This document shows, piece by piece, positions 84 through 61,145 of a DNA stretch of 64,000 bases (positions within the stretch are counted from its first letter, which is position 1; the number at the start of each line of letters is the position of its first letter). This stretch comes from Epiperipatus broadwayi. Taxonomy: Eukaryota; Animalia; Onychophora. The notes below the pieces were generated by a model. It worked only from the letters and a program-made list of their open reading frames with translations, was not told the origin of the DNA and did not search any database. The stretch lies in NCBI GenBank assembly GCA_028023455.1, contig JAQFVV010000011.1:4836001-4900000 (forward strand), given 5' to 3'. The position numbers and the translations under genes are program-made.

Positions 84-395
84 GGGATTTGAGTTTTCTT
101 CATCAGACTTTCATTGATATGGATGGCTGAAAAGTTGGAGCTTGGAGTGGATTGAGGCCTGTCCATTAAAGTATGAAGATTTGCTATCTTAATATAAACT
201 GAGCACTGATTATATATGTGTGTGGGAGATGATAATCTGGATCAACTGATGAGTGCTGATTTAGCACAAAATATGTATATTGGTGATTATATATCTTTTC
301 TACATGTGTGTGGTCATGTGTATCAGTTGTATGAGATAGTGTGGATAGTTGAAGAGTGCTTGAAAATTTGAGTTCAAATCTCCTATACTTACAAT
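84..395 (+). mobile_element. Family-1 hammerhead-containing dispersed repeat (~300 nt), near full-length copy
   Basis: Collinear with copies at 21267-21565, 32469-32710 and 40562-40850. Contains an HHR motif at 241-284 and ends in GAGTTCAAATC. Confidence 0.85.
241..284 (+). ncRNA. Minimal type I hammerhead ribozyme motif (family 1), decayed G12>A
   Basis: ATCAA-CTGATGA-GTGCTG att TAGCAC-AAAA-TATGTA-TA-TTGGT. Confidence 0.7.
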
Positions 396-539
396 AATGA
401 GTAAAGAAATTTAAAATGATTTTGATTTATTTGATGATGGAGGTACTTGATAAAGCTTAAGTTCAAATCGTTAGATTGTTTGAAGTTTCACATAATTAAC
501 TTGGCTTAAGTAATAAGGATATGACCAACAAAAAGACAA

Positions 540-2100
540 GGAAGTCATCTTTAAACATTTATTATTAAAATAAAATAAAAATGGAACAAATAAGGTAATA
601 GCTAGCTTGTAAGTCCATCAAACATGTCATGAATGACAATAAAATACAAGAATAAAGACAAAGTAGTAGTATTAAATAAAAAAATGCTACAAAAAATTCT
701 TGGCTTTGGTAAATATACAATACATTCATCATTTGATTTTGTTAGTAAAATTTATGATGTTGTTATTGATGTTAATGATGTATTATGTGCATTAGACATT
801 AGTGAAATGTATGGATCAATTGATCAGATGGCTTCTATTGAAATTATTTCTCATGCATTAAATTTAAAAAATGTCAATGTTAAAACAATAAAATTTATAG
901 TTGAAACATTAAGCTTTATTGATAAAAATATTTATACAGTCTTTAAGAAGATTTTTCTAAAATGGGTAATGGATAGCCAATGGGTTTGCCTACAGTTGCT
1001 CAAATATGTAATTTTGTAATTTCTACATATGAAGAAAATATGTTGAAAAAGAAAGATTATCAAAAAAGATTACTTTATATTATCAGTATGTTGATGTGAT
1101 GTTAAAGATTTCTTTAAAGAATTAAATAATATAAATGGCTTAAAGTGGATCAAAACAGATGAAAATTTAATGTGCATTCAGGTCCTCAATCTTAAGATAA
1201 CAGAAATATATGTAAACTGGATTACTATATGAATATTAATATTAAACCAATAACAAAAAGAGGCTATATACCATATAAATCAAAATTATCAATGTCACAT
1301 AAAATGGTAGGTTGAAGTCCTTCTTGTTCAGAAATGATAATCTTTGTAAATATTCATCAGATAAATGCAAAAATATTGAAATGAATTCGAATGTAATTGT
1401 TAAATGTTGGTTATAATTACAATTATATTTATTATATCATTAAAAATTTCAATACGAAATATAAGTATAAAAATAAAAATTTCAATACGAAATATAAGTA
1501 TAAAAATATAAATAATAGTGTTGATTTTTCTATTAATAAAATCTGGATATCAATACCATATATTTTGAATCAATAAGCAAATTTCATAAGGAAAGGTATA
1601 TGTGACATTGCATTTTATGCACCTCCTACATTAAATAAGTTAATAAATAACTCTAAAGATAAAACCTCATTTAAAAATAAAAATTGTATCATTTATAAAT
1701 GGATATGTAGGTGTGGTAGCAAATATATAGAGGAATCGAGGTGTACTTTGGAGAAAAGAATGAAAGAACACTTGTTGCTGCTATTAAAAAGAGTCCAAAA
1801 TACAAAACAAAATTGCAAAAATAATAATAACATATCAGCTTTCATTTTTTACGACCGTAATAAATCATGTATATATGGTTTTAATTTCAATTATAATAAT
1901 GTAAAAATATTGCAAACTAAAAGAAATACCAATAAAAGGAAAATAAAGAAAGGTATGCTAATATATAAATACAGACAAGACTTAATCAATAGGCAGGCAG
2001 CTAAAATTAAAATCATGGAATTATGGGAAGGTTGATTTTTCAAAGAACTAGTTGACAAAGACTACGAGGATAATCGAAAGTGCTCCTATGTGACGATTGT
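540..2100 (+). mobile_element. Degenerate Penelope-like retroelement (RT + GIY-YIG endonuclease + terminal HHR)
   Basis: ORF 633-1019 has DVLCALDISEMYGSID (RT motif A-like). Frameshifted G*PMG and YQYVD follow. IIYKWICRCGSKYIEESRCTLEKRMKEH at ~1690-1770 is GIY-YIG-like. Confidence 0.85.
2048..2087 (+). ncRNA. Decayed minimal hammerhead at the PLE 3' end (helix III GCGC type)
   Basis: TAG-TTGACAA-AGACT...AATC-GAAA-GTGC-TC-CTA. Two transitions away from CTGACGA, immediately after the EN stop codon. Confidence 0.55.
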
Positions 2101-2259
2101 ATTTTTTTATCGTTTTCAAAAAAATTTTGATTACTGTATTTACTAATATTTAATTATAATATTATATATATATAATACCTCTCCTTCGTCATCACCGTGA
2201 GAATATTGTGGAAAATAAGCTTGAGTTATTTGCATTTAGCATTTTCAATTAAGCTGAAT

Positions 2260-2480
2260 AACTAATCTCGATATTATATTGGATGTAGTACCAATTCCCA
2301 TATTGTTTTTCTTCTTCTTTTTATTTATAAAAACTCCACTCCACTTGTGTTTCCAATATTTTTTTGTTCATAGTAAAGCATATGTCCATTTTTCAAGTCT
2401 ATTCATCTTCTAACTTCATAACTTCCAACAATGTCCCATGATTCTCTTTAATTAACAGCAAGCTGCAATTTTAGTATAGT
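2260..2480 (-). mobile_element. RTE-clade LINE AP-endonuclease fragment
   Basis: Minus-strand translation WDIVGSYEVRR...GHMLYY...SGV resembles the RTE EN N-terminus. It is frameshifted. Confidence 0.5.
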
Positions 2481-3001
2481 GAACAGTTCAAAGATTCTTG
2501 AGCTTAAGGTTTATGGAACATGCTCAGCTCTGCCATTTTTAGTGCTTGAATTTCTTATGAATTCTCAAGCAATAAACCCATTTGGTTATAAATATGTGTA
2601 AACACACACACACACATTTATAACTCTAAGGGATCATAAATATATTGCAAAGAAATATGAGTTTCAGTGGTTACATATTAGCATTATGATTCTCTATCAT
2701 TGCATATTTACTGTTTAACCATTTATACGCATAAGTTTAAAATGTGTAGAAATAGCTCTGCTCAATAAATTTAAATTTTCATAGATTTAGATTAATTTGC
2801 CTTAAATATCTTTATTAGTTCAATATTCTCTGTACTGATGTTGTGATTTAAGTTAAAATCTTAAACACACAGTATGAAGTGGCCATTTCTTACTAAAATA
2901 ATAATTGGATTATAGCAGCTAAAGTCAACCCAATTAACATTGCTTGAGATTTGCTGGTTCAACTGTTACATATTATTTAGCATTGTGATTCTCTATATTT
3001 T

Positions 3002-3035
<34 letters not shown>

Positions 3036-5507: not shown

Positions 5508-5578
5508 ATGGGAGATAGTGACCTGGGCCATTTGATGAGTGCTGGTTCAGCATGAAATGCATCTTGGGGATCATTTGT
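5508..5578 (+). ncRNA. Family-1 hammerhead fragment, core C3>U
   Basis: GGGAGATAGTGACCTGGGCCAT-TTGATGA-GTGCTGGTTCAGCAT-GAAA-TGCATC-TTGGGGATCATTT. Confidence 0.65.
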
Positions 5579-10614: not shown

Positions 10615-10990
10615 ATGGGTCGAGCGCTTTCAAGGTTTTCCCTCATATTCATGGCCAACATAAGTAATAAATCATTTATGTAGTATTGTTAACTAATAAA
10701 ATATGCAAATGTAAATGCAAAATAATTTGTCCATTTTTTCGAGATAGAAAAGCACGTGTCGCGTCTATTGATGGAATTGTTGTCACTGATAATAAAATAC
10801 GCCTCCTTGACTTTTCTTTTGCAGTCGTTGGCTTCAGAGCATACTATCTTGGGGTTGCCTGGTTCAAAGACATGTCCAGCCTGCTTAAAAAGTGTATGAA
10901 ACACTTGAACGAGAAGCTATAAAGATTCCAAAAATTATTATACGCTAAGCGCTTTCGAAGCCCTTTGCCTCATATTCATAGCGGTATTGT
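10615..10990 (-). mobile_element. 5'-truncated Penelope-like element: GIY-YIG C-terminus flanked by two HHR-like pLTR motifs
   Basis: ORF 10689-10904 has GHVFEPGNPKIVCSEANDCKRKVKEAYFI...INRRD..FSISKKW. A repeated motif GAAA-GCGC-TY lies at ~10620-10655 and 10944-10983. Confidence 0.75.
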
Positions 10991-11924
10991 TTAATATTTC
11001 ATCATTTTATTTAAATGCTGGTGATGTTCTATTTTTTTAATCCATATTCAAATAAGGGCGCAGCTTCTTAAATATCAATTTAAAAACAATTCAGCTATTT
11101 TGTTAAGCCACACAAATTTATCAAACTTTTTTTTATTTAAATGTCGGTTGTAATTTCTTATAGTATTGAACTTCAAAAATTATACGGATAAGTCAGAATC
11201 TTCAAACAAGTTGTCCATCTTCTCTTGCATTCAAACATTCAGTCTTAGCATATTGGCTTATACAGTTATTGCATCATTTGAAAAGTAACAAAAGATAATG
11301 GAAATGATCTGCATTTGCTTTTATACCATGCTTAGTTTCCAGTGTTTAGTATACTAGTTTTTCCATTTCCTTTTCCATTTCTGTGGCCGTCTATTGTTGC
11401 ACATATTATATTGGTTATAGTTAAAAAATAAAATTACATAACAGAATTCTACTTTTATTTTCCACACTTGGTTGCCGAGTGATTGACTTGACATTAGGTC
11501 ATCACTATGTTTATAAAGTCTATGTCTTAATTTGTGACTTACAACACATTGGTAATACATTGATAATTAACTTGTTGATATATATATATGTTTAGATTAT
11601 TTCTTTTTGCTGGGCTTTTATTTTTCATTATATAAGAAAAATTAGTTCATTGTGACATTTGTTTGATTTTGGCATTTAACAAAGCAAACATTCATCATGT
11701 ATATATATATTGAAAAAAAAGGAATAGTGCATATTTAATCACCTAATAGTTAAGCTTATGTTTTGAATGGGTTTGAGTTGTTGGTGTGAATAAGTAAAGG
11801 CTGATTTTGATAGGATTGTAAGCTATCCTTACTATATATATATATTCATAGTATTATTTCCTGAAGATTCCATGTAATAAAAATATAATAATTAAATAGC
11901 TGAAGTTTTAGTACAATTACAAAT

Positions 11925-12570
11925 ACTTTTCTCAGAGCTTCTTTCTCAAATCATAAGAATGTGTGTGGTGACATTTAAAATAGTAATTTTTTTTCCTTTG
12001 CATAGAATGTATTCTACTAGTTAGGAAGTTTTAAAAAATATTTTATCTTCCCAATAGCTTTTTCCAAATATTATTAATTTTCTTTAATTCACACTTTTCA
12101 TTTATGCTCTTAGGCTTTTTAAAAATCTCTATAGCTTCCCTTAGCAATCTTTTGTATATTGTTCAATTTTTTTCAGAATATGGGTTTTATTAAAATTAAT
12201 ATCATTGTTTGTTAATTTAATGTGTGAATAAATGGCAGATGAATTGGATTTTTCTCTAACTTCCAAAATGTGTTCTTCCTTTCTTATGTTTATTCTACGA
12301 TTCATCCGTCCAATGTATGAATATAAACAAACTCCACATGGAATTTCATATACACCATGACACTCCAAAGGAATTTTATCTTTAGGGTGTGGAAATACTT
12401 CATTAATTTTTTGTAATGTAGTGTAAACTGTGTGGATATTATTTTTCTTTAAAACATTACTTACTTTTCAACCAATAGAATTTAAGAATGAAAAGAAAAT
12501 AACAAAGGAAAAAAATAGAAATTTTAAATCTTACCACACACATTCTTATGATTTGAAAAAAACTCTGAGA
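11925..12570 (-). mobile_element. 5'-truncated Penelope-like element (GIY-YIG) with an inverted terminal copy
   Basis: KDKIPLECHGVYEIPCGVCLYSYIGRMNRRINIRKEEH. 11925-12003 is an inverted repeat of ~12495-12572. Confidence 0.85.
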
Positions 12571-15500
12571 AAATATGTTGTTATTGTATTAAAACATGAG
12601 CTATTTAGCTGTTATATTTTTTTTAAATAATTACAATCTTCTGTGTATACACCTTTTAAGCAAAAAATATTTTTTATTATTACAGTTTTGACTGTTCCTT
12701 GCAGTCTTTTTCAGATCTACAAAAATTTAAATATTATAACAATACAACCAAAACTTATATAAACATCAATAAATTAACAATCAATTTATACAGATAATAA
12801 CCCTCTTAAACAGTATACATCATTTATTACATTATATTACTAAATTACTCAATCCTTTTATTATACAGAAGTTCCTGGAAATAATATAATGAATTCATTT
12901 ATCCATGAGAATATTAGAATTAACTATATATATATATAATAACTCATTTTAATGACTATTTCAATTAGATACTTGAGGAAATTGTCTCATGCCTCATCTA
13001 TGAGACTAGTTCCTGTATTACAATAAAGATCAAAATCATTACAGAGTAAATAAGACTTTAAAAAATGTTAACAAATGATTTATTATAAATATCTAATCTT
13101 TATTGATTCTTTAGCAGAATAATTCACACATTAAATTTTGATGCTTGTATACTTAAGCAAAAAATATTTTTAAGACAAAAATCATTAGTAGTAAGAAAGA
13201 AACATTCCCTAAAATCTCTTCTGCGGTTCCCATAAATGCATGTGTGACTAGATGAAACTAGAGCAGGATCACCCATCAAATAAAGTGTAAGATAGAATTA
13301 TTCTCTGATTATAATTTTATGAGGATGCAGATATTGTGTTGCCACCACTCCAGATTTGGAAATATTATGGATTTTAAGGCAGGAGCAAACTTTGACACAA
13401 TATTTGGAGGAAGAGGAAGTGAAGGTCATGAACCACCTGGTGCTTGAACTTCTTATGAACTCCCAAGCAATAAACCATGGAATTTTCTGTTTTATTTATT
13501 TTTGTAATGGCAAAAGTCTCAGAGATTTAAAAGACCTAAAAAGAGATCACATTTAAGATGTATAGATGGAATAAAAAAGTTTGCTGATGTAACATGAAAA
13601 AAAAAGAGGTTGTGAATTGAAGCTATTGCATTAAAATTGACAGATCTTTATACAGCAATAGATTAATAATGCTTAAAAATGTTGCCGATGATTGCATTTG
13701 TTTTCATCAATTTTAAAATTAGAGTTGATTATTAAGAATGAAATGAAAACAAGAGAAAAACATTAGCATTCCGTTCATCTGTGGAAAATTTTAAATGCAG
13801 ATGTAATATCATTAATCTGCATTAGAGGATTTTATGCCTCTCTGGATTAAAGATTTTGTTGGATTGAGAATATATCAACAGTATATAATTTAGATTTCTT
13901 TATTATAATTCTTCCATATCTTTAAAATCACTAATAACTAATCATTTGTAAAATTTAATGGATATATATTGTTTTCAAAAAATAAAAATCCACCAATTGA
14001 ATCCCTTCCCTCCCTTTTTTTTTCCATCAAAATTTATTTTAAAAAATGTAAATTTTCTGTTGCAAACTTCATATCTGCTAACAAATACTCCATTCCAACT
14101 TTTTCACTTTCTGTATACTATAGTAAATGAAACGTTTTATTTTTTTTGTTTTTAAAAAAAATATAAAATTGATTAAAAGGTAGGTTTTATTAATTTATGT
14201 GTATTTACTTAAATTTGTTTTATCTTTAATTTTATATATTTTATCTCTAATTTTATTTTAAAATGTATATATATATTGATTTATTTACAATACGGGATTT
14301 ACCGTTGTTGTTTTTTTTACATGTTTGAATACTTAAGATTAAATGAAAAATGTTATTTAAGTAAATATTTTTTCTACAGTTATAAAAATAGAACTCCCTC
14401 CCCCTCTATAATTTGCTGAAATGACGATAACAGTATGTCTACATGTCATTTATGTAAATTCGGCAAAGTTTTAATTTAAATATATATATACGTATATTAT
14501 TAATCGTTTAAAATACTCAATTCATCCTATCAAGAAATTTAAAATCTAGATGTTAGAAAAGACCTATATAATAATATTTAATTATATATGTTAGAATAAA
14601 GGTAGGTATATGTGTAAGGATACCATAAATAAATGCATAGTTAGATAAATATTGTTTAATTATTTATATATAAGCAAGTCTAGGTAACGGTAAAACATTA
14701 TACCTCCATAACCAGTATTAAAAGTTGTCTTATTATAACTGGGGGTTTTTTTTTTCTTCAATTCATATAACAATTCAAATTATTTAAAATCTTTATACTT
14801 TTCAGATAAACTAAATAGCTATTCAATATTAAACTGATTAAGCTAACTGGAATAGCCAATTCATTACTTGGAAAAGTCTGAGCTGTACTATTAGTGTAAA
14901 TTGTAGATCATTATTACAATGAATAAGCTAATATATCCCAGTTCTTGTAGATGTTTACAGCAACGTCATAAAATGATGGATTCTTAATATCAACATTCAT
15001 CTGATAATATTTTGAGAAACTCTAGTTAATAAGCATCGCTATCAAATATTTAATTAAATCAGACTACTCAATCATATTAATCTTTTTATTTAACTAATGA
15101 TTATGCGGTATATTAAAATAACTTTTTACATTTGTTTGTCAAACAATCAAAGCAAAGTTCAGAATCGATGATAAAGATCCAATCGGTAATGTAGACAAGT
15201 TTTATCTAATCATTCTTAATATCCTTTTAAATGTAAAGACAGCTTTTTATTTATATATAATAGCTTTAGAAATTTTTTAAATAATATATATGAGTCAAAT
15301 GGAGGATTTTTTTGCTAATTTATTATATTTTGAAACAGTTTATTCTACAGTTGATTAGGTGCATAAATCCCATTCCAAAAATAGTGTAATAAGTGATGAG
15401 TTCTGGTTTTATCGAAAATACTTCTCTGGAAATAGATGGGGTATGTGTTGTGAAGTTCATTTTTACTGGCCTACATACCAATGTAATTTAACTGGCTTTT

Positions 15501-18295: not shown

Positions 18296-21266
18296 TTACA
18301 TTCTAACTTCAAGTATATGAATTATTCTTATATTTCAAAAATATTTTCTTATTTTAAAAATAAAAATGTTATAGTTAGTTATTTTTTTATTACTTCAATG
18401 AATGCTTGAATGAACACTCTGTAGAATATATGTAAATGTGGCTTCTCAATTTATTATTAATAACTTTATTATTGTTACTTTTTAAAATTTTGTTTATATT
18501 ATAATCTTGGATTAGATATGTATCTCATACATATTAAAGGGTGTCCATGTTATATATATATATATGCATGTATATATATGCGTGTGTGTGTGTGCATGTT
18601 AAAAAGTATCGTACAATTGCGATATAAAAGCAATGCAAATTCAATTCTAATTAATGTTTATAAAAAAAAACATGAACTATAATATGCTATATACACTTGT
18701 ATATGACATTAGCTTGGGAACAAATATAGTGTAGTTTGCAGCTATACTGTATATAATATATACATAATGATAAAAAAGAAATTATAGGAAGTTTGCAAAT
18801 TTTTGATTTTTTATTGCTTTAAAGTTACCTTAAAAGACATATATAAAGATGAAATCTAACACCACAGAAATATGTTAACAACTGAAAAATAAATCTACTT
18901 CCATATGACTTCCAATACTTTATATGAAAATAAAAGAAGACAATGATACCCTAAAAGAATGAATGACACATTAATAGAATTTTCAATGAAAAGTTTATTT
19001 TGATACTAAAAACATTGCATTAATATAAGCAGTGCTTCAAAGTTGATGTTTACCATTCATATTTTTATTTATTATATAGCACTGTGTAATTTAATATGAG
19101 ATCTGTTATTTATTTAGATGATTAATTTTATCATTAGAGTTAATTAGATTATAAATCTAAGTATAAGGTGATTTGCATGAGACTGCATTAACATTTCTAT
19201 TGATTTAATAATTGCACTTATTGTGCATACATTTTCCTGTCATAAAAAAATTATAGCAATGTTTCAAATCTCATCCTAGCCATCTTCTAGACAGTAGAGA
19301 TTATTCAGTGATATTGCAAATAAGAATTTTCAAATATATTCTGCAACATATCTGATTACATTTCACAATCCAGAAATGATGGTGAGATATTTGCAAAAAG
19401 ACAATGTATATAAACCAACCTAAAATATATGTTCACATTACATATTTGTATATTGGATTGAACATAAGGGTGGAATAAATAGAGAAATAAATAAATAAAG
19501 TATAGTCTATCTTAACTAAAAATGCAATGGAATTAAAGTCTCAGATGCATATTATTAACTTCTTTCCAATTAATTCAATAAGCTATTATATTGAAGCAGA
19601 AAATAATAATAAATGCTATTCTTGATAGATGATCTTAACTATAATTTCATATGCTTAAATGATAAATACAGCATTCTCCAATTATACATCTTGGAGAAAC
19701 TAAGTCATTACATCTCTGTAATAATCATTTTTTACAATGTTATTTATACTTTGATACTGCATGGTTATAAAACTATAGGACTTTGACTCTCATATAATCA
19801 TTCTATCTCATTTAAACTGTTTGTTTCCATAATGCTAAATTTATACATAATAGTAACTTAATCATCATATGCTTACTTGAAACTCAATATCTGATTATCA
19901 TATGCCTTGAGTAATATATTTTAGATAGTGTATAGAAAAAGCTTTGAACTTTAACAAAATTAATTATTTAATGAAATAGGGTTTGAACACAATATAATAT
20001 GAGCATTTTATAAATCTTGTACTTAATAACCTTGTTAGTTCATATCAGTATTCGTATCACTTGTAAAATTATAATTCTAAGATTATCAGGTATTCATTTA
20101 TCTATTTCTGCGGCAATAACAGCCCAGAGTATATTTGAAATTTTTTATATTTTGTATAAGAGACCGTTTATACTGATATGCCATTTTTTAAATGTATATA
20201 AATAAATAATGAAGTAAACTATACGTCAGCATAAATTAAATTTATTTCTATCTCCTAAAATTCAAAGGTGAGTTAATGCTACTAAATACGAACGTATATT
20301 AATTATGAGGAGAGGAGAAACAAAATGTTACATTTTTAAATGTTAATAATATCAACAACAATATACTGTATACAATAAAATAAATGTTAAAAAAACAACT
20401 TTCAAATCTAATTAAAATTAGCAATAAAAAAAAGATAAATTCGATTAAACACATAAATGTAAACGTTTTGACCTAGATAGATTTTCATAATTAGAATTTT
20501 AGTTCAACTTGAGAAATTTGCTTAAAACTAATTTTTTGTTAATTCAAACTCTTTGCATGCACATTGTAGACTGTTTAAATTCTTGCAATTAATTATTTTC
20601 TGCTGAACTATCTTTCCATTGGCTTTTTTTTCCTTTTTGTCTTTGCAATACTTAAAAGTTTTATAATATTTTCATTGTTACCGGTTGAGATTTGGTAGGT
20701 AGATATTTCCTATTCATTTGGTCAGATCATAAGGGAGGTAGACAGGTTTCCTAACTAAAAATATTGCCTTTAAAAATTTGACAGATTATATATCAAAATT
20801 GGTAACAATTGATGCAATTTGTAGATCAGGCTGCACGTTCTAATGATTATAGCAACATAGATAATTTTTTTTATACTGCTGTGATGCAAGACTTCAGCTT
20901 CTATGTGGATTTTCAAAATCTTTTTACTTTGCAGCAACTATCTGTAAAATTGTGGGTTAAAAAATTTCTTTACTACTAGATATTTATTTGTGCAAATGGC
21001 CTGTGTGAATTTTGTAGTACCATTTCTTCCCAATGTTCAAATCTCTATCTTAAATACCTTTTCAACCTATGTTGCAAATAAATCTAAACATCAAAACCAT
21101 TGTTTTATAATTGCATATTTTTTGACTTCCAATTTTATTAATTAACTAAATGCAAATTTTGTTTGTCAGCAAGTAAACTTTATTGTCCATTTCAAATTTA
21201 TTTGCTAAATTTTATCACATTAACGAATTTTCTAAATAACTTTCAATAATAATAATAATATATGCA

Positions 21267-21565
21267 GGGTTCGAACTCAGACTTTCACATGACCCACCAC
21301 ACTCAGTGCCATCTCATATTGCTGACCCTCCTGATCACACACATGTTGAAAAGATAAATAATCACCAATATATGTACTTCATGCTAAACCAGCAATCATC
21401 AGTTGGTCTAGATTACTATCCTCACACATATATATAATCAGTATTCAGCTTTATATTAAGATAGCCAATCTTTATACTTTAATGGAAAGGCTTCAATCTA
21501 TTCCAACTCACAACTCTTTAGCCTTCCATTTCATTGAAAATCTGATGATGGAACGTTCAAAGCCC
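21267..21565 (-). mobile_element. Family-1 hammerhead repeat, full-length copy (HHR 21364-21407, decayed)
   Basis: Minus strand: ACCAA-CTGATGA-TTGCTGGTTTAGCAT-GAAG-TACATA-TA-TTGGT. Confidence 0.85.
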
Positions 21566-21614
21566 TTGTTAATTTAAGTTTTTTTTTTTTTTTTTAAATA
21601 TGAATTTTCATTTT

Positions 21615-21905
21615 ATATATATTGCTTATAATAACTTCTCTCATATACACTTTAGTGCAAAAACATTTTTTAAATAAAACTTCTTTATTTTCCTGACAGT
21701 TTCGACTGTCCAGCAGTCTTCATCAGAGCATTCTCAAATTTCCTCTACTTTTTAAATCTAAAAAAAAAAGTAGAGGAAATTTGAGAATGCTCTGATGAAG
21801 ACTGCTGGACAGCTGAAACTGTTAGGATAATTACCAGAATTTTTATTAAAAAAATTTTCTTGCATTAAAGTGTATATGAGAGAAGTTATTATAAGCAATA
21901 TATAT
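21615..21905. mobile_element. ~290-bp inverted repeat carrying two family-3 hammerheads (21692-21730 minus, 21788-21827 plus)
   Basis: Arms pair over ~135 nt. Minus HHR: CTGATGA-A-GACTG ctgga CAGTC-GAAA-CTG-TC. Confidence 0.85.
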
Positions 21906-22445
21906 GAATATATAAAGAAATGCAAAGAAAGTAAAGGAGAAGAATAAGAGTATATACTTCTAATAAATTTTCATTTTACAAAATTATTTTGATATAAAAA
22001 TTATTATAAATTTTAAACCAACTCATTTAAGTTTATAATGAAAAAGATTTAACAAATATATGAATGTGCTCTAAATTTCTAATATTTTTCCCCATTTTTA
22101 CATTTTACAAATAAATAACAATTATTAATATCAATTACTTAATTTTTATAGCACATATTTGAGATCAATAAAACAACAGCTTATTCGTTTATTATTTAAT
22201 TCTTTTTATACAACAAATCACTCATTCATTCTAGAGTGATCTCTCTTTTATATTTCTATTTAATTATGGATTGTATGTTTGTTTTGTTACTTTTTACATA
22301 TGTACTTTATTTAGAAACTTTTGTTGAAGATATGATAAATATTAATAAAGAAATGTTCATTTATTACTAACATCTTGAAATTGAATAATTAATTTTATCT
22401 ATGTGTGATAGGCAATATCCACTCTATCATTATATATATTTAGAA

Positions 22446-29924: not shown

Positions 29925-30320
29925 GTTTACCCAGAGGCCAAATTCTCCATACAGTAGCACCACCAGTGCAAGCTAGAATAATTAATGAATGCAAGAAGGT
30001 TTGTGCATAAAATCCCTATCTATAATGCGTTCAGATCTATACAACTATACAAGATAATGCGCTTAAATTGAAAACATTATTGTGGTTTCATTTTGGACTC
30101 AAAGCTTTACAGACTGCTGGAAGGTTGCATTAGATCCTAAGATATAGGTTCAGTGCTGTCAGATCCAAGACTCTTCACTGATGAAAGCCATAAGCTGGAA
30201 ACTAATCTGGGGATTTTGGATGAGTAGGCACTAGATAGGAATTTTATGCACAAACCTTGCATCCATTGATTACTCTGGCTTGCACTGGTGGCACTACTGT
30301 ATGGAGAGTTTAGCCTCTGT
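29925..30320. mobile_element. Family-2 pair: minus 3' fragment (29925-30025) and plus copy (30105-30320) with HHR 30172-30213
   Basis: TCTTCA-CTGATGA-AAGC cataa GCTG-GAAA-CTAA-TC-TGGGGA. Confidence 0.85.
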
Positions 30321-32468
30321 GTAATCTGTAATATTGTAATTGCCTTACCTAATGATAGAATGCTTTTTAAAATACATAAATAGTGAGATAGCGTGGCCTG
30401 ATTATTTTTACACTGGCAACTTTTAAGAAGTAAGATTGTATTACTAAGAGATATCTTCAATGTAATAATCAATTATTATTAAATAAATTACTTACTTCTG
30501 GTTAGAATTGGATATTAGTCTAGTTTTTAATTATTTATAAAAAAAATTAAACTATCTAAAGAAATAGAAACGTTTTTGAAAATTAAGTTGATTTAGAAAT
30601 ATGAAATAATTTATTTTTTCACCACATATATACCATCCAATGTAATGTATCATTTGGCATTTATTAATTATTAAAGCTTACACTAGATGGCATAGTTGTT
30701 GTGAAAGAAAGAGAATATGCTGCTGTAAACCAAAATCAAGGGATAAGAGTCATGATATCTTATTAATTAAATAAGAAATATAAAAGAAATGAATAAAGAA
30801 CTTTTATAATTAATGATTAAGACATTTCAAAATATCTGTAGCCAATCAAATCTTTTAATTTTTCACATACTCCTCTAAAGCTTGTTAAAAATTCTGAGTG
30901 GCCATTTTGTATAAAATACCCCATACCGAATTCTCTCATTATATGTATATTTTACGTATCAGAACATTCTATTTATATACTTTAATTATAATGACTTTGA
31001 CTTTGAAGCTTGAATGTTTTAGCATAAATCATAAAGAAAAGTATATTGTGCACATCAGTTTCTTAATATTCATACTCCACGATAGATGAAATAATTTATA
31101 TCCACATTTAAATCCCAAATAAATATAATAGTAAAAAAGATATATGTGTAATTAATGGATTAGTTTGCACTTGATAAATATCTGTAGCATCAAATCTTCC
31201 AAATATATACCTGTAAAGCTTGACATAAATTCTCATTGATGTTTCAACATGGATATCTTTCAAATCTCCAGTTCACATGATAAGAATAGATTATTTATGT
31301 CAAATACATGTATAGTGGTATTTATTAGACTGGGAAATTTTTCATATGATAAAAGTTCAAAATTATAACAAACTTTAGAGAATTGGGGGGAAATCTGGAA
31401 GATTTGAATTCATTACAGATATGTATATAATTTCTGGAGTACTCAAAATTCAATTGGAAAAACCGATTTAAAAGTGAGGCAACAATTAACAAAATGTAGG
31501 TATGAATGAATATTGATAAATGTACAATCTTAAGAGGGTAGGATAATAAATGGGTTGTAAGTTTTTTATGGCAAACCTAAAGTACTCATGAACCAATTCT
31601 CTGTGAAAGTCATTGGTACTATCAAAATTTTATTTATATTAGAAAAAGAACTGATTGGAAAACTTTTAAGATCAGAATGGAAAGAATTATAAAAAAGTAC
31701 TAAGCTTCTATGAGAGGAAATTCTAATAATTACTGGCTAAATATTAATATTTAACTGTGATATAAAAAAATGAAATAGCTAATTACTTTTACAATCATAA
31801 AAAAATATGATATACCTTATGTAAATAATATTTTAATTTGCGAAGCGCCGATAGTTGAAAACTGAAATAAATCGAGATACTGCCAAATCTCTAGTGCTCG
31901 TTACAATACATAACTGACAGCCAATCAGATGTCAAGGCTAGAGTGCAGAGAGTTATATGATTTTGGTCATTATTTGGTTAAAGCAAAAATGACATATTAA
32001 ATATATTTAATGCAGAGAAACAATCAAAACCATTCTGAGAAAAAGAGAACTAAGACGACCAATAACAGAAACATGATTAACTTTTCAAAGAAACTTGGAT
32101 TGTAACTTAATAAAACCATGTTGGCACATATTGAATGCTTTAAATTGCTCAGGTATTCAAAACAAGTTTGAATGCTAGAAAATTCAGAACTGAGTCATAA
32201 TCCAAGGTTTTGAACTCTAGAATCTACCATATTACATTTGCCTCAAACCATGCAGAACTGACAAAATATTCAAAGTATACATCAATAAAAAAAAAAAAAA
32301 GGTATTGAATTTAGAATGGTAAGAGAGCAAGACATGAATTATGTCTAGAAAGAAATTGAATTATATCTGAAGTGTTTTAATACTAAATCAACTGAAAATT
32401 GAAATATAATACAATTAAAAGTCAAGCAAAATAATTACTAAAGTTAGAATAGAAGAGATTTAATTAAA

Positions 32469-32710
32469 GGGGATTTGAACACAGACTTTCAAGCTCCCTT
32501 TAGTCATCCATACTATCTTATATAACTGATACACATGACCACATACATGTGAAAAAGATAAATGAACTCCAATATATATATTTCATGCTGAACCAGCACT
32601 CATCAGTTGGTCTGAATTATCATCTCCCAGACATATCAGTGCTTGGTTTATATTAAGATAGCAAATCTGCAAACTTTAATGGACAGGTTTCGATCCTCTC
32701 CATTCTCCAA
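32469..32710 (-). mobile_element. Family-1 hammerhead repeat; HHR 32569-32611 with intact core
   Basis: Minus strand: ACCAA-CTGATGA-GTGCTG gtt CAGCAT-GAAA-TATATA-TA-TTGG. Confidence 0.88.

Positions 32711-34802: not shown

Positions 34803-34803
<1 letters not shown>
34732..34803 (-). pseudogene. tRNA-Gly(TCC)-like sequence, probably a SINE or pseudogene copy
   Basis: GCGTTGGTGGCCTAGTGGTTAGCATAGCTGCCTTCCAAGCAGCTGGCCCGGGTTCGCTTCCCGGTCAATGCA. Anticodon TCC, T-loop A58>C, and a CATATGAAAAA tail shared with 50508. Confidence 0.8.
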
Positions 34804-39400: not shown

Positions 39401-40561
39401 AAAATTCATTGTTCTGCACAGAAACATGCAGATTGAGTGAAAATGTAATCATAATATGAAGAAACTTTGATTACTGGCAGTAAAGCTAATCCCTTACCCT
39501 TAGGACATTGAGCCAATGGTTTACCTTTATCTATATGAAAGTCTGTATTTTATATACAAGTAAACATTTTAAATACATAATGTCTTCACACTAAAATAAT
39601 TTATTTCTATAAACAATATTGATTTACTGTTGTTAAAATAGAGTATGATATAAGTAATCAGTAGTCAGCTGTTTGAATCAATGATGAATTGCTTACTTAT
39701 TGATCTTTTTCCATAGTAGTAAAACATGTTAAAAAAAGCAACATGAAGAAAGATGACGAAGAAAATTATAAAGTAATAAATATAAGATTTGGGTACTTAA
39801 AGAAGAGGAATATCTAATTGAAGCAATGGACAAAAAAAATAAAAATAAGAGAAGATTCCTACTGACAATGTTTTTTTAAAAATAAGGATGACTCTTATTA
39901 GTAACAATGATAGTATATACTTAAGCCATGATATTAAATATTTACCAGTATTCATTTTAAATAAGCAGTTGTTATATTTGCATGGATGAATAGTATTAGG
40001 CTTGTTCTTGAAATATATGATCACTTCAAGATGTTATATCATTTTTTATGTAATATAACAACTGACTTACTGATATTTTATGCATGGTTACTCCAAAAAT
40101 TTTTATATAAATTTAAATGGAAGTGCGCCATTTCTAATTTTAAAAATATGGAAAGATAATCTAACACCCTATTTTTATTTCAAAAATGAAGAATTATCAA
40201 TGATAAAATCTAATTAGCTAATCAGCCAAATTCAACATTTTTTTAATGTTTAGCACAATTGTAATCTCAATTACAAATCATGGCTTAATTTTATTAACCA
40301 TAACTTATATTAAATCCAAGTAACATCAATATTTTATTTTGCTAAATTAATTAAATACAAAATAGGTCTCAACACAACATGTTTTTATTAGCAATCTCAA
40401 AATTGGGTAGAAATTTAATGTCATCTTTTATTTACACATTATTGTAAAAAACAGGATATCAATTTCAATAAAATGCTGTGATTTGCAAAAAATTAACGAG
40501 GTAATGAAGGTTGTAAAGATTTATTAAAAGTCCAATAGTATTAATAAAAGTTACAATTAAA

Positions 40562-41085
40562 GGGGCTTTGAACCCAGACTTTCAAGCTTTCTACAGTTAT
40601 CCCTTCTATCCAATATAACCAATATACATGACCATATACATGTGAAAAAAATAAATGATCTCCACTATATGTATTTCATGTTAAATCAGCACTCATCATT
40701 TGGTCTGGATCATCATACATAAATGTAATCAGTGCTCGGTTTATATTAAGATAGCAAATCTGCACAATTTAATGGACAGGCTTCAATCCTCTCCACTCTC
40801 CAACTCTTCAGCCATCTATATTATTAAAAATCTGATGATGAATGCTCATGGATGGAGAGTGGAGAGGATTGAAGCGTCTCCCTTAAAGTTTGTAAATTTG
40901 CTATCTTAATATAAACTGAGCACTGATTATTTATATGTGTTGCAGATGATGATGGTTTAGGATAAAATACATATATTGGAGTTCATTTATTTTTTTCACA
41001 TCTATGTAGTTATGTGTATTGATTGTATTGAATAGAGTGGATGATTTACAGAGCTTGAAAGTCTAGGTTCAAATCCTCTTTAATT
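40562..41085. mobile_element. Family-1 head-to-head pair (minus 40562-40850; plus 40853-41085)
   Basis: Minus copy has a decayed HHR at 40662-40704. The plus copy lacks most of the HHR 5' half. Confidence 0.85.
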
Positions 41086-46205: not shown

Positions 46206-46249
46206 CTTCCAGATCATGATTTCAAGCTATTTGCTATCATCAGTGAAAG
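46206..46249 (-). ncRNA. Minimal type I hammerhead (family 5), minus strand
   Basis: CTTTCA-CTGATGA-TAGC aaata GCTT-GAAA-TCATGA-TC-TGGAAG. Confidence 0.8.
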
Positions 46250-46493
46250 ACAGTTAACTTGTTTTTTGTTTTTCATAAATGTACCTTTGAGGTCTTTCTA
46301 GCAATGATATATATTGCAGAGGCTTCTACTATGTGATGATGCTGAACTGAGATCAGACCCATATAGCTATCTGGCCTGCTATGCTGAGTTTGAAGACATT
46401 ACGTGTCTAAAAGATTCACGCTTGCAAGCTGAATAGAAACTGTTTCATAAACGCTTAGAGTTTGTGTTTAGATCTAATTTCTAAAATTCCTGT

Positions 46494-46537
46494 CTTTCAC
46501 TGACGATAGCAAATAGCTTGAAATCATGATCTGAAAG
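46494..46537 (+). ncRNA. Minimal type I hammerhead (family 5), plus strand
   Basis: CTTTCA-CTGACGA-TAGC aaata GCTT-GAAA-TCATGA-TC-TGAAAG. Perfect 6-bp helix I and palindromic helix III. Confidence 0.85.
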
Positions 46538-48167: not shown

Positions 48168-48661
48168 CAAGGGTGGGCAAATAGTGGCCCAAGGGCCACA
48201 TGTGGCCCGCTAATAGTTTTTATGTGGCCCACCAAGACAATCAGAATAATCCGCCTTGAACTGAGATTTCTTTCCCATGCATGACTGAAGATTTGCCTTG
48301 TATTTTCCACTAGGATGGCCGTGTCAATACACATACGCAGTGTAGATACGATGTGCAGTGCTTTTCCAGTTGATCTGGTTAATTTCAATTTTGTCTTTGC
48401 ATTAGCAAATATATGCCTTTCCAACTTTAGTGAAACCTTGAATCCTCCAAAAAAATGTAAAGTCGCTGATGAATGTCATGTGTTTAATGAAGAATGGACA
48501 AACAAATATTTCTTTGGTAATACAGGGAATAAAGCAGTGTGTTTATTGTGTCATGAAAAAAAGTGCGGCCCTCCACTAACCTTCGCTTCCACAAAGTGGC
48601 CCCCAATGCTGCCCTCCACCAACCTCTGTGGCCCCCAAGCCAAAACAATTGCCCACCCCTA
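48168..48661 (+). mobile_element. hAT (Charlie/SPIN-type) non-autonomous element
   Basis: TIR CAAGGGTGGGCAA / TTGCCCACCCCTA with 8-bp TSD CATTAGAC. Transposase N-terminal remnant KCKVADECHVFNEEWTNKYFF...KAVCLLCHE. Confidence 0.92.
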
Positions 48662-49180
48662 CATTAGACCATTTGCAACTAATTTGTACTTGGCAGTAGT
48701 GCAAGAAAGTGGGTATCAGTAGTAAGTGATTTGGTATTGATACTATTTCTAAACTGGAGGGAAAAAAATATTTTTATTTTTAGCCCATTTATGTACATAA
48801 ATGCGTTTCTTGAAAAAAAATTTAGTTTCTGCTTTTTAGTTTTATATAATTCCAGAAATTACAAATGTAGAAAGTTTAAATGCAATTTAAAGAGTATTAA
48901 ATTTTACAAAAATTCAAATTTTTTGCTATTTTTGGCCAAATTTGTTTGCAAATTCTAAAAAATTATATTATCCTCACAAATACATATGTATGCAAAGTGT
49001 CAACTAGATTTTAGATTGAAAATTGGCAAGTGCGTGAAAATTTTGCTGCAACATAACTAACAAAAAACAGTAAGTTAAATAAAAGAGTGTAATAAAAATA
49101 AGAATGCAACAATTATATTAAAAAGAATTAAATAATAAGCTATAGATAATTGGTATACATCTATCACTAATAGTCTAATA

Positions 49181-49662
49181 CAGAGGTGGGCAAATAGTGG
49201 CCCGAGGGCCACATATGGCCCGCTAAGTTTTTATGTGGCCCACCAAGGCAATCAGAAAAATCTGCCTTGAACTGAGATTTCCTTCCCTTGCGTGACTGAA
49301 AATTTGTCTCATATTTTCCACTAGGATAGCCACGTCAATACACATGTGCAGTGTAGATACGATGTGCAGTGCTTTTTGAGTTGATCAGGTTAATTTCAAT
49401 TTTGTCTTTGCATTAGCAAATATATACATTTCCAACTTTAGTGAAACCATGAACCCACCGAAAAAATGTAAAAATCGGTGATGAATGTCGTGTGTTTAAT
49501 AAAGAATGGACAAACAAATATTTCTTTGGTAATACATGGAATAAAGTAGTGTTTTTATTGTGTCAGGAAAAAAGGTGTGACCCTTCACTTCCACAAGGTG
49601 GCCTCTGATGCAGCCTTTCACCAATCTCTGTGGCCCCAAGCCAAAACAATTGCCCACCCCTG
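49181..49662 (+). mobile_element. Second copy of the same hAT non-autonomous element
   Basis: TIR CAGAGGTGGGCAA / TTGCCCACCCCTG with 8-bp TSD GTCTAATA. Confidence 0.93.
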
Positions 49663-50497: not shown

Positions 50498-50592
50498 TTG
50501 CTGTCAAGCATTGGTGGTCTAGTGGTTAGCATAGCCAACCTTCCAAGCAGCTGGCCCAGGTTCGTTTCCCAGTCAACACGTGACATATGAAA
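50498..50592 (+). mobile_element. tRNA-Gly-derived SINE with target-site duplication
   Basis: tRNA-Gly-like body at 50508-50580, A-tail, and flanking direct repeat AAAATGCATGCATTTCA (50481-50497 / 50593-50609). Confidence 0.85.
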
Positions 50593-50933
50593 AAAATGCA
50601 TGCATTTCAGAAATAAGTTCTTTCATCAGCTTCCTTGGAGTACTGCCATCAATATTAATAACAGTTTTATATTAAGATCATAATAATGAATGACTTTGTA
50701 TCAAAATGTGAATGTTTAGTATTGAGCACTAAATTAAGATTTTAAATAAAATGAATCTTTGATTCTGTCTTGATTAATGTACAGCTAAACAATCATAGCT
50801 CAAAATATTCATGCTTTGATACCAAATCAATCAATATGACAATATGAATATAAGGTGGCTGTCCATTATGTTTGCATGAATTGTGAACACACATATATGG
50901 TAGACTGATTTGGGAAATTCTTTCATGTACTAT

Positions 50934-51192
50934 AGCACTCATAACGCTCTAAACAAGCTTTTTTTTTATTATGATAAATGCTACTACAAAAGATGGCATT
51001 CAAATCATCTTTATCTTAGATTGTCCCCACCCCCAGACCGGTTTCGATCTATGGGTCTCGTCAGTGAGGAGTTGGTCGAAACCGGTCTGGGGATGGGGAC
51101 AATCTAAGATAAAGATGATTTGAATGCCTTCTCTTGTAGTAGCATTTATCATAATAATAAAAAAAAGCTTGTTTAGAGTGTTAGCATGCTCT
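50934..51192. mobile_element. Family-6 hairpin element (~110-bp arms) centred on a hammerhead
   Basis: Near-perfect inverted arms. HHR at 51031-51069 (minus) and a partial plus copy at 51074-51092. Confidence 0.9.
51031..51069 (-). ncRNA. Minimal type I hammerhead (family 6)
   Basis: CCTCA-CTGACGA-GACC cata GATC-GAAA-CCGG-TC-TGGGG. The opposite arm has GGTC, which restores helix II. Confidence 0.85.
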
Positions 51193-56599: not shown

Positions 56600-56995
56600 A
56601 AAACAGCAAACTCCATACAGTAGTGTCACCCAGTGCTAGCCTTATTAATCAATGGATGCAATCAAGTTTGTGCATAAAATCCCTATCTCATGCCTACTCT
56701 TCTTATATCATAGACTAGTTTCAAGCTTATGGCTTTCATCAGTGAAGAGCCTTGAATCTGAGAACAGTGCATCTAGATCTTAAGATCTAATGCAACCCTC
56801 CAGCAGCTATCTTTTATCCCTTTAGACAACTATAAAGCTACGAGTCCAAGATGAACTTGGATTGAAAAACTTATATGGGGATATTGGATGAGAAGGCACC
56901 ATATAGGAACATTATGCACAAATCTTCTTGCATCCATTGCTTAGTAAAGCTTACACTGCATGGTAGCACTGTATGGAGAGTTTACTGCTGCACTC
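56600..56995. mobile_element. Family-2 head-to-head pair; minus copy has an intact-core HHR at 56707-56749
   Basis: Minus strand: CTCTTCA-CTGATGA-AAGC cataa GCTT-GAAA-CTAG-TC. The plus copy at ~56850-56990 has a decayed HHR. Confidence 0.85.
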
Positions 56996-59148: not shown

Positions 59149-59565
59149 ATATATATCATTAATGTTTGTGAAAGAAAGTACATATTTACTGTGATTAAAG
59201 TTTTTGTGGCAACAAATATTCAAGTTATAGAGTTTAATAAATTAATTAGGTTTGTCTTTTAGTTAACACTAAACTAAACATGCAGAGATCAGATTCAATT
59301 AAGATAAGTAAGTAGTCGATAATCATGACTACATTTCAGTTTTGTCTTTTTGATATCAATTCAACATTTAATGCTGCACAAGATCCTAATTTTCAATAGA
59401 ATTTCATATGAACAAATTTCAAAATCCTATTTAGCCATCTAAGAAAAGGAAAACATATAATAATGAGAAGAATTGGAATTATTAATATAATTAAACAGTA
59501 ATAACATATTCTCACACTTTACACAATGCAAATGCAATGCTTTATTATTCCATACTCCAAAAATA

Positions 59566-59603
59566 GCTGACAGTTTCGACTATCCAATTGTCTTCCTCAG
59601 AGA
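59566..59603 (-). ncRNA. Family-3 hammerhead, solo copy
   Basis: TCT-CTGAGGA-A-GACAA ttgga TAGTC-GAAA-CTG-TC-AGC. A more decayed copy lies at ~12683-12716. Confidence 0.6.
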
Positions 59604-60009
59604 TATATTACAATAATCTATTATAACAAAATAAATATACAAAACAAAATTTTTAATACTATTGTTAATAAGGTTATCAATCTATCAAATATGAATTTCA
59701 TAATGCTATGATTTGATCAGCACAGTCCCATGCCCGTGACTCAGTAATTTAACTCTATTACTGGTGAACTTTATGCATTTTTTTAATCATAAGCAGATTT
59801 AAAAAAAATTTCAGGTAATCACAAATATGGCAATTTTGCTAGCCAACCAGAATTGGTTAGTATATGGATTATCTAGCTATTATTAACTAGAGGATGAAGT
59901 TGTAAAATTAATTTGGTTAGTCAGAGAGGTCTCAATGAATAAATTGTATTTTGAGATGTACCCCAATACTAGTGGAGAAGATATTATAATTTTACAGGTT
60001 TCTATATGA

Positions 60010-60260
60010 CAGTGTCATCTACTGCAAGACATAGTAATCAATCTAGTGCTTATTCAGCCATAATATCCCAGACTAATGTTTAGCTTATGGTTGTCATCAG
60101 TGAAGAGCCTTGAATCTGGGAGCATTGGTGTCAGCTATAAGCTTGAAACATGTCTGGAAATACTAGCTGAGTTGGCACTAGATATGGATTTAAATGCATA
60201 AACCTTCTGATATTTATTGCTTACTATAGCTTGTATTAGATGACAGTGTCATATGGAGAG
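60010..60260. mobile_element. Family-2 repeat, decayed (HHR 60066-60107 minus) with an inverted fragment
   Basis: CAGTGAAGAGCCTTGAATCTG is identical to 56740-56760. Confidence 0.75.
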
Positions 60261-60703
60261 AATGTAACTACTATTTAAATAGTTTTGCAAGGAAAAAATT
60301 ATGGTTAATGTTTTAATTCTACAGGTCCTGAGACCATGTCTTACCTTTACTGTTGGAATCAAGATTATATTAAATCTAGCATTCAGACCAATCTGATCAG
60401 TTTGATGGAATAAATATTCTAATGAATATGAATAATAGATGTCCTTCATTATGATGAAATGTCCTGCGTGGTTTAATGCAGTGTTAGAGTGATGAATTGC
60501 AGAACTCACAATCTATCGATTGTGCCTCCAGCTCTGACATTCACATTACTTGAACTTCTTATCAATTCTTGAGCTTGTTGCCCCCCCCCCCATTGAACTG
60601 AAGTGAGTTTACTTTATTATAATGTTCCATTTTTTTTTTTTTGTTGTTTAATAATTTGGAATAAATTAAGATATTATATTTAAAATAGAAAAACATACAA
60701 TAT

Positions 60704-61145
60704 TACAAAACTAGCCAAAAAAAACAAAATTTTACTAAAATTCTCTCAAGACCATGGTTTCATGTATTAACAAATAGGCCCTTTCAAATGAAATTCAACA
60801 AAATTCACACAACATATATATAGAAAACAAAAGTCTTCCCATAATTCACCTCAAACATCAAACACATTTAACATCAAAGGATATCTTCATGAGATTGAAG
60901 GCCTCAGATCCACCAGTCTCATTAAGACATCATTTTCTTGAACCAGAGGCTATCAATCTCACGACATTCTTTGAAGTTAAAGGTGATTGGTATATGAAGT
61001 GACTTATGGGAAGGCTATATTGTTTTCTATATATGTGTTGTTTGTATCTTGTTGAATTTTATTTGAGAAGATCTATTTATTAATATATATGAAACCATGG
61101 TCGTGAGAGAATTTTACGTAAAAATGTTTTTTGGCTAGTTTCGTA
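60704..61145. mobile_element. Family-8 inverted-repeat element with decayed HHRs (GAAA-CCATGG-TC) in both arms
   Basis: GACCATGGTTTC at 60750-60761 and GAAACCATGGTC at 61091-61102. Arms are ~130 nt. Confidence 0.7.

Follow-up and report, generated by a model that had tools for sequence, protein, structure and literature searches.

Families of short hammerhead ribozyme repeats with Penelope-like insertion anatomy in an onychophoran genome window

Copies of several short repeats, each carrying a type I hammerhead motif, are scattered through a 64,000-nt stretch of the Epiperipatus broadwayi (Onychophora) genome (assembly GCA_028023455.1, contig JAQFVV010000011.1, forward-strand positions 4,836,001 to 4,900,000), which was analyzed over its full length and is referred to here as the window. 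The window is animal nuclear DNA with a G+C content of 27% and few long open reading frames (ORFs), and within-window repeats make up 12.7% of it. The CpG observed/expected ratio is 0.32 across the window, TG and CA are over-represented, and transitions are the main class of difference between the window copy and genome-wide reads; this CpG loss and transition excess are consistent with methylation-driven decay of repeats. We conclude that the window is probably strewn with at least five families of non-autonomous hammerhead retroelements that were inserted in the manner of Penelope-like elements (PLEs). The elements are ~135-400 nt long, with one type I hammerhead each, and a typical motif has a helix I of ~6 bp, a helix II of ~4 bp and a helix III that consists of a single A-U pair closing a self-complementary insert of 3-6 nt.

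Identification of hammerhead motifs

Every CUGANGA...GAAA pair in the window was listed before a strict descriptor was applied, which called for an exact core, three or more of the four pairs of helix II, 2-8 nt of self-complementary insert, UH, and no fewer than 4 bp in a row in helix I. This descriptor recovered 5 sites, compared with 0.007 expected from 300 first-order Markov simulations. Pairing demanded from the helix II junction misses family F5, which has a U.U at the helix II base, and family F3, which has an extra nucleotide, and the scan was relaxed accordingly. The type I core was scored at C3-U4-G5-A6-N7-G8-A9, G12-A13-A14, A15.1-U16.1 and H17, and the order of the helices was checked too. 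A covariance model (R1) built from six intact motifs (alignment A5) and run without filters returned 13 sites at E<0.02 in the window, 12 of which were accepted; the site at 37335 was rejected as low complexity. The accepted sites are:

46205-46250 (minus), 46493-46538 (plus), 30171-30214 (plus), 56706-56749 (minus), 51029-51071 (minus), 32566-32613 (minus)
21362-21409 (minus), 239-286 (plus), 60064-60107 (minus), 5525-5570 (plus), 40659-40706 (minus), 22612-22660 (plus)

With four F3 motifs and one decayed remnant (F4) added, the total comes to ~18-20 motifs, which roughly agrees with the two dozen or so copies counted in a first-pass annotation of this DNA, but only ~9 have an intact core (exact core at 32606, 56742, 46243, 51064, 21726 and 59600 on the minus strand and at 30178, 46500 and 21792 on the plus strand). 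Across the motifs helix I spans 4-6 bp and helix II 3-6 bp, and compensatory changes were seen both from family to family and within helix II of F3, in a small sample. Minimum-energy folds of F1, F2 and F5 include both helix I and helix II. One further candidate is uncertain:

50585..50637, minus strand: CUGAUGA ... GAAA UGCAUGCA UU; passes the descriptor, has only G.U and A-U pairs in helix I, and is not matched by R1

Repeat families and their inserts

In every accepted family, A15.1 and U16.1 flank a self-complementary insert that differs by family. The first-pass annotation had listed eight families. Four of these (F1, F2, F5 and F6) carry canonical motifs and F3 a minimal one, F4 is a decayed remnant, and F7 and F8 are not hammerheads; for those that stand, the classification as type I hammerheads of the PLE/retrozyme kind, minimal or with a short helix III, is supported. 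Among the inserts proposed, CUAG, UCAUGA (twice), CCGG and CUG were verified, the F1 insert UACGUA is obtained only by allowing for CpG decay, and CG and CCAUGG were dropped.

The F2, F5 and F6 hammerheads read as follows:

F2 (three copies): CUCUUCA CUGAUGA AAGCCAUAAGCUU GAAA CUAG UC UGGGGAU; insert CUAG, with CUAA and UUAG in decayed copies
F5 (two copies): CUUUCA CUGAYGA UAGCAAAUAGCUU GAAA UCAUGA UC UGAAAG; U.U at the helix II base
F6 (one complete copy): CUCCUCA CUGACGA GACCCAUAGAUC GAAA CCGG UC UGGGG(G>A)U

Their loci are:

29927..30324, plus strand: F2 element with ~95-nt terminal inverted arms; hammerhead 30171-30214, core intact, insert CUAA, 56.1 bits
56611..56978, minus strand: F2 element; hammerhead 56706-56749, insert CUAG, helix I 3' strand decayed, 48.6 bits
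60064..60107, minus strand: decayed F2 hammerhead; GAAA lost, insert UUAG, 30.9 bits
46075..46638, both strands: F5 twin insertion; inverted 5'-truncated copy 46075-46253 with hammerhead 46205-46250 (minus) and a 44-nt 3' tail
46254-46635, plus strand: direct copy of the F5 twin; hammerhead 46493-46538; the two F5 motifs score 59.5 and 57.7 bits
50942..51183, both strands: F6 twin hairpin; minus copy from 51075 down to 50942 with the complete hammerhead 51029-51071, insert CCGG, 48.5 bits
51076-51183, plus strand: plus copy of the F6 twin, beginning at G12 of the motif

The arms of the F5 and F6 twins, 146 and 89 nt long respectively, are each 96% complementary. With the genome-wide majority base at position 51030, F6 has U-A and not G.U as its sixth helix I pair, and the predicted F5 cleavage point lies directly after UH, that is, after GAAAUCAUGAUC. 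The ribozyme module is homologous across F2, F5 and F6 (74% mean column identity), and F2 and F6 have near-identical helix I and loops but different inserts. Comparison of the families with blastn-short gave no similarity outside the motif; with a homologous module in unrelated flanks, it is the motif and not the element that is conserved, which would support selection acting on the hammerhead motif. Together with the descriptor result, this bears out the earlier claim that unrelated repeat families share one hammerhead layout, helix I - CUGANGA - helix II - GAAA - X - UH - helix I.

F1 is an element of ~300 nt with the hammerhead in its middle and a tRNA T-arm-like box near its 3' end (alignment A1). 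Seven copies in the window bear a hammerhead, one of them intact:

32453..32710, minus strand: F1 solo copy with the sole fully intact F1 hammerhead (32566-32613, 45.3 bits), reading CAGACCAA CUGAUGA GUGCUGGUUCAGCAU GAAA UAUAUA UA UUGG
84..395, plus strand: F1 copy; hammerhead 239-286 with G12 changed to A (AAAA), insert UAUGUA, 34.7 bits
5503..5586, plus strand: divergent, 5'-truncated F1-like copy adjoining a (TA)n(CA)n microsatellite; in its hammerhead (5525-5570, 20.8 bits) C3 has become U and the insert is UGCA
21249..21550, minus strand: F1 solo copy; hammerhead 21362-21409 with GAAA changed to GAAG, insert UACAUA, 34.9 bits
22440..22760, plus strand: F1 twin locus; an inverted 3'-part copy (22463-22535) lies head-to-head with the direct copy; decayed hammerhead 22612-22660
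40546..41085, both strands: F1 twin locus; minus copy 40546-40840 with hammerhead 40659-40706, C3 changed to A
40853-41085, plus strand: plus copy of the preceding twin locus, hammerhead partly deleted; the two copies lie head-to-head ~50 nt apart

The F1 inserts are UACAUA in three copies, UAUGUA in one, UAUAUA in the intact copy, UGCA in the divergent copy, and altered by an indel in one. Given the CpG ratio of the window, UACAUA, UAUGUA and UAUAUA may all have decayed from UACGUA, which is plausibly the ancestral insert.

The F3 motif is laid out as CUGAUGA-A-GACUG..CAGUC-GAAA-CUG-UC, where one extra nucleotide follows A9, ahead of 10.1, and helix I is ~2 bp long; it is a Penelope-type minimal hammerhead. 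Its insert, CUG, is a quasi-palindrome: in a dimer it yields ACUGU, with U.U at the center. The copies at 21726 and 59600 are identical at 36 of 41 motif positions, and their flanks cannot be aligned. The four F3 copies are:

21612..21908, both strands: F3 twin locus; hammerheads 21688-21733 (minus) and 21785-21830 (plus)
59562..59607, minus strand: F3 solo copy with intact core; one helix II pair changed from G-C to A-U
12675..12722, minus strand: decayed F3 copy, CUGAAAA ... AAAA

The remaining three proposed families gave the following:

~10930..10985, minus strand: F4 hammerhead-like remnant; helix I CGCUA/UAGCG, helix II GAGGC/GCUUC and GAAA-GCGC-UU are kept, 5' core AAUAUGA; not matched by R1
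61084..61112, plus strand: F8 of the first-pass annotation; only GAAACCAUGGUC, lacking both the CUGANGA core and helix II; not accepted

F7 (CG) was likewise rejected as a hammerhead, having neither core nor helix II and no R1 match at E<=10, and the same was found for all three sites assigned to F8 (CCAUGG; 13472, 2590 and 61084-61112). The sequences at 13440-13476 and 2542-2578 nevertheless form a genuine short repeat (92% identity over 37 nt) that contains GTGCTTGAAYTTCTTATGAA, the motif called family 8, and has no hammerhead.

Insertion anatomy and a PLE remnant

Five independent loci consist of head-to-head inverted pairs of 5'-truncated copies, two of them F1 and one each F3, F5 and F6. 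The outer ends of these twin loci are the 3' end of the element and the junctions are locus-specific; F1 and F3 also occur as solo copies. At F5, 30 DNA contigs pass 46263 into GCGTTAGCAAGTTTTTTAACTTG and not into the inverted arm, and at F6 a few contigs in RNA-labelled runs pass 51075 into upstream sequence unlike that of the window.

The F5 locus is the only one at which a tail and a target duplication were resolved cleanly. This twin sits in a (TA)n tract with TATATATATATG on both sides, a 12-nt duplication. The right copy ends at CTGTTGAC, and only the left copy extends 44 nt further, in a tail that reads on into the unit's first 24 nt (TTAACTTGTTTTTTGTTTTTCATA). Because this tail crosses from the 3' end of the unit into its 5' start, the template RNA exceeded one ~406-nt unit in length, as a tandem or as a circle. 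None of the elements has a poly(A) tail or a 3' tail of the type left by long interspersed elements (LINEs).

A remnant of a PLE lies in the same window:

11862..12640, minus strand: PLE remnant; GIY-YIG endonuclease ORF in pieces 12144-12467 and 12046-12162, with one frameshift; 3' untranslated region to ~11862

Directly upstream of the remnant, at 12503-12640 (plus), is an inverted copy of its own last ~140 nt, the same layout as in the twin loci. The endonuclease piece was not recognized by Pfam or by a word-indexed protein search; an exhaustive HMMER search with 12144-12467 gave 1195 homologues. The long homologues are ~800 aa, with a central RVT_1 domain, and match at their C-terminus, and one homologue scores 21.2 bits for GIY-YIG against a Pfam cut-off of 22.6. 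A PLE relative in another genome (L001) carries a canonical type I hammerhead (41.5 bits), placed ~330 nt upstream of the ORF. In the same sequence, an 84-nt tandem array at 1276-2242, inside a called 576-aa gene, gives weak and equal R1 matches (11-12 bits) that are probably due to chance.

The first-pass annotation had F4 attached to a PLE; this was rejected, as the remnant ends at ~11862, ~0.9 kb before the F4 motif. The decayed F3 copy at 12675-12722 is located ~35 nt outside the 3' end of the inverted arm of the remnant, on the opposite strand; PLEs are said to insert beside earlier copies.

Published PLE insertions show an inverted 5'-truncated copy at the 5' end, a tail of 30-40 bp that is often one-sided, and a bias toward microsatellites (Craig et al. 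2021, PMC8557442). In the PAc in vitro system, both DNA strands are cut and extended by a purified PLE protein, which begins reverse transcription at an internal position (PMC11167929). The twin layout, the one-sided tail and the type of target observed here support PLE-type mobilization, and with it the link to PLEs that the earlier annotation had drawn.

Abundance and RNA-labelled data

Over F5 the DNA word depth sums to ~2.8 million and over F6 to ~0.77 million, compared with ~30 for single-copy stretches, which suggests very high copy numbers for both families, summed depth being a rough guide and not a copy number. Both families are young and, to judge from depth, highly repeated, and they were found in the data of two organisms. 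F5 and F6 contigs are present in the runs labelled 'RNA?'. The ratio of RNA to DNA depth in X8 is 0.011 for the F5 hammerhead arm, compared with 0.001-0.004 for other repeats; X6 has no such excess.

Helix III palindromes and dimerization

A self-complementary insert of this kind cannot form a hairpin alone, because the loop would be 0-2 nt. By chance, Watson-Crick palindromes make up 1/16 of random 4-mers and 1/64 of random 6-mers. The inserts of F2 (CUAG) and F6 (CCGG) differ by a symmetric double change, which is a signature of intermolecular pairing. For the helix III modules, calculated energies are -3.2 to -8.3 kcal/mol for homodimers and -2.4 kcal/mol or weaker for heterodimers; the F3 module (+1.1 kcal/mol) and the majority F1 variant UACAUA (+1.0 kcal/mol) form no stable homoduplex. 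The minimum-energy structure of the F5 homodimer has an 8-bp AUCAUGAU helix III, and F5 alone gives the textbook double hammerhead when whole motifs are folded with RNAcofold. Comparison of homo- and heterodimers of whole motifs by RNAcofold is otherwise uninformative, as any hairpin RNA gains from domain-swapped homodimers.

Proposed mechanism and alternative explanations

From published work on such motifs, a lone hammerhead of this type would not form helix III. Two copies on a multimeric transcript would pair their inserts into an intermolecular helix III of 5-8 bp, a double hammerhead, and then cleave; this would release a unit-length RNA, open to circularization by tRNA ligase. The copies in the window went in as PLEs do: 5' truncation varies, the 5' end is met by an inverted copy that is itself 5'-truncated, a tail of ~40 nt may extend the 3' end on one side only, and the targets are AT-rich or microsatellite DNA with a duplication of ~10-12 nt. 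The PLE fragment 30 kb away shares this layout. The different family palindromes would most simply arise by drift of each master lineage, the sole constraint being that the insert stays self-complementary.

Several observations weigh against this account. No motif reaches the gathering score (34 bits) of the Rfam model RF00163 (Hammerhead_1), whose sole match is 51030-51070 at 27.6 bits, the other motifs being absent at E<=10; variants with a short helix III fit this model poorly. UACAUA, the most common insert of F1, is a palindrome only on the assumption of CpG decay, and this bears on the earlier annotation, which had named a non-palindromic consensus insert as evidence against its reading: the plain F1 majority is such a case unless decay is accepted, and the other accepted inserts are self-complementary. 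The F2 loci at 30178 and 56611-56978 have an identical arm junction, so the F2 arms were inherited and not formed on insertion; an insertion-made twin layout was therefore withdrawn for this family, whose arms reflect either a twin turned master copy or a rod-forming RNA. The window contains no intact PLE and no unit in which pseudo-long terminal repeats (pLTRs) flank an ORF, and comparison with the 3' end of the one decayed PLE remnant revealed no similarity to any of the families. Tandem same-strand hammerhead pairs are also absent from the window, so that the copies here could not dimerize in cis. In the RNA-labelled data, depth over repeats mostly tracks DNA copy number and is not separable from DNA carry-over, and no read-end pile-ups or circular joints are listed in these data, which are assembled contigs only.

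The elements might instead be short interspersed elements (SINEs) mobilized by a LINE, with a hammerhead that only trims read-through transcripts, as has been proposed for the schistosome repeat Sm-alpha. F1 does end in a T-arm-like box (GAGTTCAAATCC), and a fragment resembling the C-terminal region of a LINE reverse transcriptase was noted by eye at ~16.7-17.06 kb (minus). But a search of F1 with ARAGORN gave no tRNA-like gene, Pfam had no match for the LINE fragment, LINE-type tails are lacking, and inverted 5'-truncated twins, a one-sided tail and a microsatellite target are hallmarks of PLEs that the PLE remnant shares; we regard this origin as unlikely. That the twins are miniature inverted-repeat transposable elements (MITEs) or foldback DNA transposons, with an incidental resemblance to hammerheads, would account for the fixed ~95-nt terminal inverted arms common to two F2 loci and for the resemblance of the F3, F5 and F6 loci to long hairpins, which Rfam miRNA-precursor models often match, spuriously in our judgment. 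This seems most improbable, given the chance expectation for the motif in a window of this size, the solo copies of F1 and F3, and the conservation of the hammerhead module across families with unrelated flanks. Moreover, inner junctions vary by locus, other genomic copies read through differently, and the arms stop at the 3' end of the element, as in retro-insertion. Terminal inverted repeats fixed in all copies, with a short fixed duplication, as expected of MITEs, were not found, the F2 arms alone being fixed.

As to why the palindromes differ, the first-pass annotation read the distinct inserts as family-specific dimerization keys, which would be under selection and would allow many ribozyme RNAs to share one PLE machinery without cross-pairing in trans. 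The helix III modules are indeed orthogonal in energy, F2 and F6 combine nearly the same helix I and loops with unlike inserts, and the dispersed copies have no partner in cis, so that any cleavage of their RNA would depend on one in trans. Orthogonality, however, is automatic for any set of different palindromes, and with six inserts, drift under self-complementarity and selection for difference cannot be told apart. Under the established model, pairing of dimers takes place in cis on tandem transcripts, so that specificity in trans is not needed; there is no evident cost of cross-cleavage, and two of the modules (F3 and majority F1) have no stable homoduplex. Selection for such keys is thus quite improbable. 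A further idea, that the palindromes pair two template RNAs of one family for a dimeric particle of PLE reverse transcriptase and endonuclease that primes on both DNA strands, would, if true, explain both the family-specific palindromes and the head-to-head twins. It goes beyond both the key proposal and any text found in the literature searched, and appears to us very unlikely. Drift of the palindromes in elements inserted PLE-style is the explanation we prefer.

Other features of the window

34732-34803, minus strand: tRNA-Gly(UCC) gene; the sole Rfam match above gathering score (43.4 bits) and the sole ARAGORN call
61722-62303, plus strand: unbroken, intronless ORF of 193 aa with a TB2/DP1/HVA22 (REEP-like) domain (Pfam 1e-26); closest Atlas clusters are chordate REEP5
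48215-49589: another high-copy repeat, two tandem units of ~1011 bp, 88-90% identical, DNA depth ~4e5; no hammerhead detected in it
16681-17055, minus strand: translated pieces resembling, by eye only, the C-terminal region of a LINE reverse transcriptase (CGCETWTM, IRWINKMTNEEV); no Pfam match

The REEP-like ORF could be a single-exon gene or a retrocopy; host genes have reportedly been retrotransposed by PLEs. In the tandem repeat, contigs link 49467 back to 48467. Many DNA contigs link ~47806 straight to 51832, omitting ~4.0 kb, so the block that holds the tandem repeat and the F6 twin is apparently nested in another repeat that is intact elsewhere in the genome.

Comparison with known systems

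The basic features of these motifs, namely a palindromic short helix III, cleavage as dimers, genomes with many families, and PLE ancestry, are already published. Palindromic helix III, action as dimers, an extra nucleotide that separates position 9 from 10.1 and many families per genome have been described together (PMC4209133), and metazoan type I hammerheads with a helix III of 1-2 bp and a small palindromic loop form dimers on tandem transcripts (PMC4209133, PMC7229834, PMC6765202). Work on non-LTR retrozymes describes axolotl motifs in which a palindromic tetraloop caps a 1-bp helix III, and a U.U at the helix II base (Cervera & de la Pena 2020, PMC7229834), and a preprint treats retrozymes as PLE derivatives, with 57 families in Xenopus (Li et al. 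2026, 10.64898/2026.07.22.740005). Minimal hammerheads of PLE pLTRs are the subject of Cervera & de la Pena 2014 (PMC4209133) and of Lunse et al. 2017, as cited in PMC6765202.

There is a close likeness to the non-LTR retrozymes of animals (PMC7229834; 10.64898/2026.07.22.740005), whose AT-rich units, also non-coding and 150-450 nt long, carry one type I hammerhead each. Shared details are a helix I of ~6 bp, a helix II of ~4 bp and, as in axolotl HHR_Amex1, a 1-bp helix III with a palindromic loop; the U.U at the helix II base of F5 recurs in HHR_Amex2. Both here and there a genome holds several families, depth suggests very high copy number, and a PLE link has been proposed. Retrozymes, however, are defined by tandem arrays of 150-450-bp units and by circular RNA, whereas the copies in the window are all dispersed or inverted twins, and the 6-nt inserts of F5 and F1 are longer than the usual 2-4-nt retrozyme loops.

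F3 resembles the minimal hammerheads of PLE pLTRs (PMC4209133) in its extra nucleotide between A9 and 10.1, G10.1-C11.1 pair, long helix II, helix I of ~2 bp, palindromic positions 15.2-16.2 and proposed action as a dimer; it differs in lying in a non-coding element of ~145 nt and not beside a reverse transcriptase/endonuclease ORF. F1, F2, F5 and F6, unlike the pLTR motifs, are canonical. With PLE insertions (PMC8557442, PMC11167929) the loci share 5' truncation, an abutting inverted copy, a one-sided tail and AT-rich or microsatellite targets, but the units inserted here are short non-coding hammerhead elements.

Schistosome Sm-alpha and Sj-alpha and newt satellite 2 are likewise short interspersed or satellite repeats with type I hammerheads, and those of newt satellite 2 cleave only as dimers. 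In Sm-alpha the pol III promoter is 5' and helix III is stable, whereas in F1 the tRNA-like box is at the 3' end and is not confirmed as a promoter. The dimer initiation sites of retroviruses, palindromic loops that set the specificity of co-packaging, offer an analogy for the key idea in that a short self-complementary loop sequence decides which RNAs pair; unlike in retroviruses, nothing here points to dimerization for template selection rather than for ribozyme folding.

With the basic phenomena published, this finding extends known biology and does not change it. What is new is modest: an insertion anatomy for the PLE route of short hammerhead elements, and the F2/F5/F6 set. Hammerhead-bearing, PLE-style non-autonomous elements occur in this genome as a dense natural set, and their insertion anatomy provides direct structural evidence for the dependence of animal retrozymes on PLEs, a proposal that until now rested mainly on co-occurrence and pLTR phylogeny. 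F2, F5 and F6, as homologous modules that differ mainly in the insert, also form a test bed for dimer specificity set by the palindrome.

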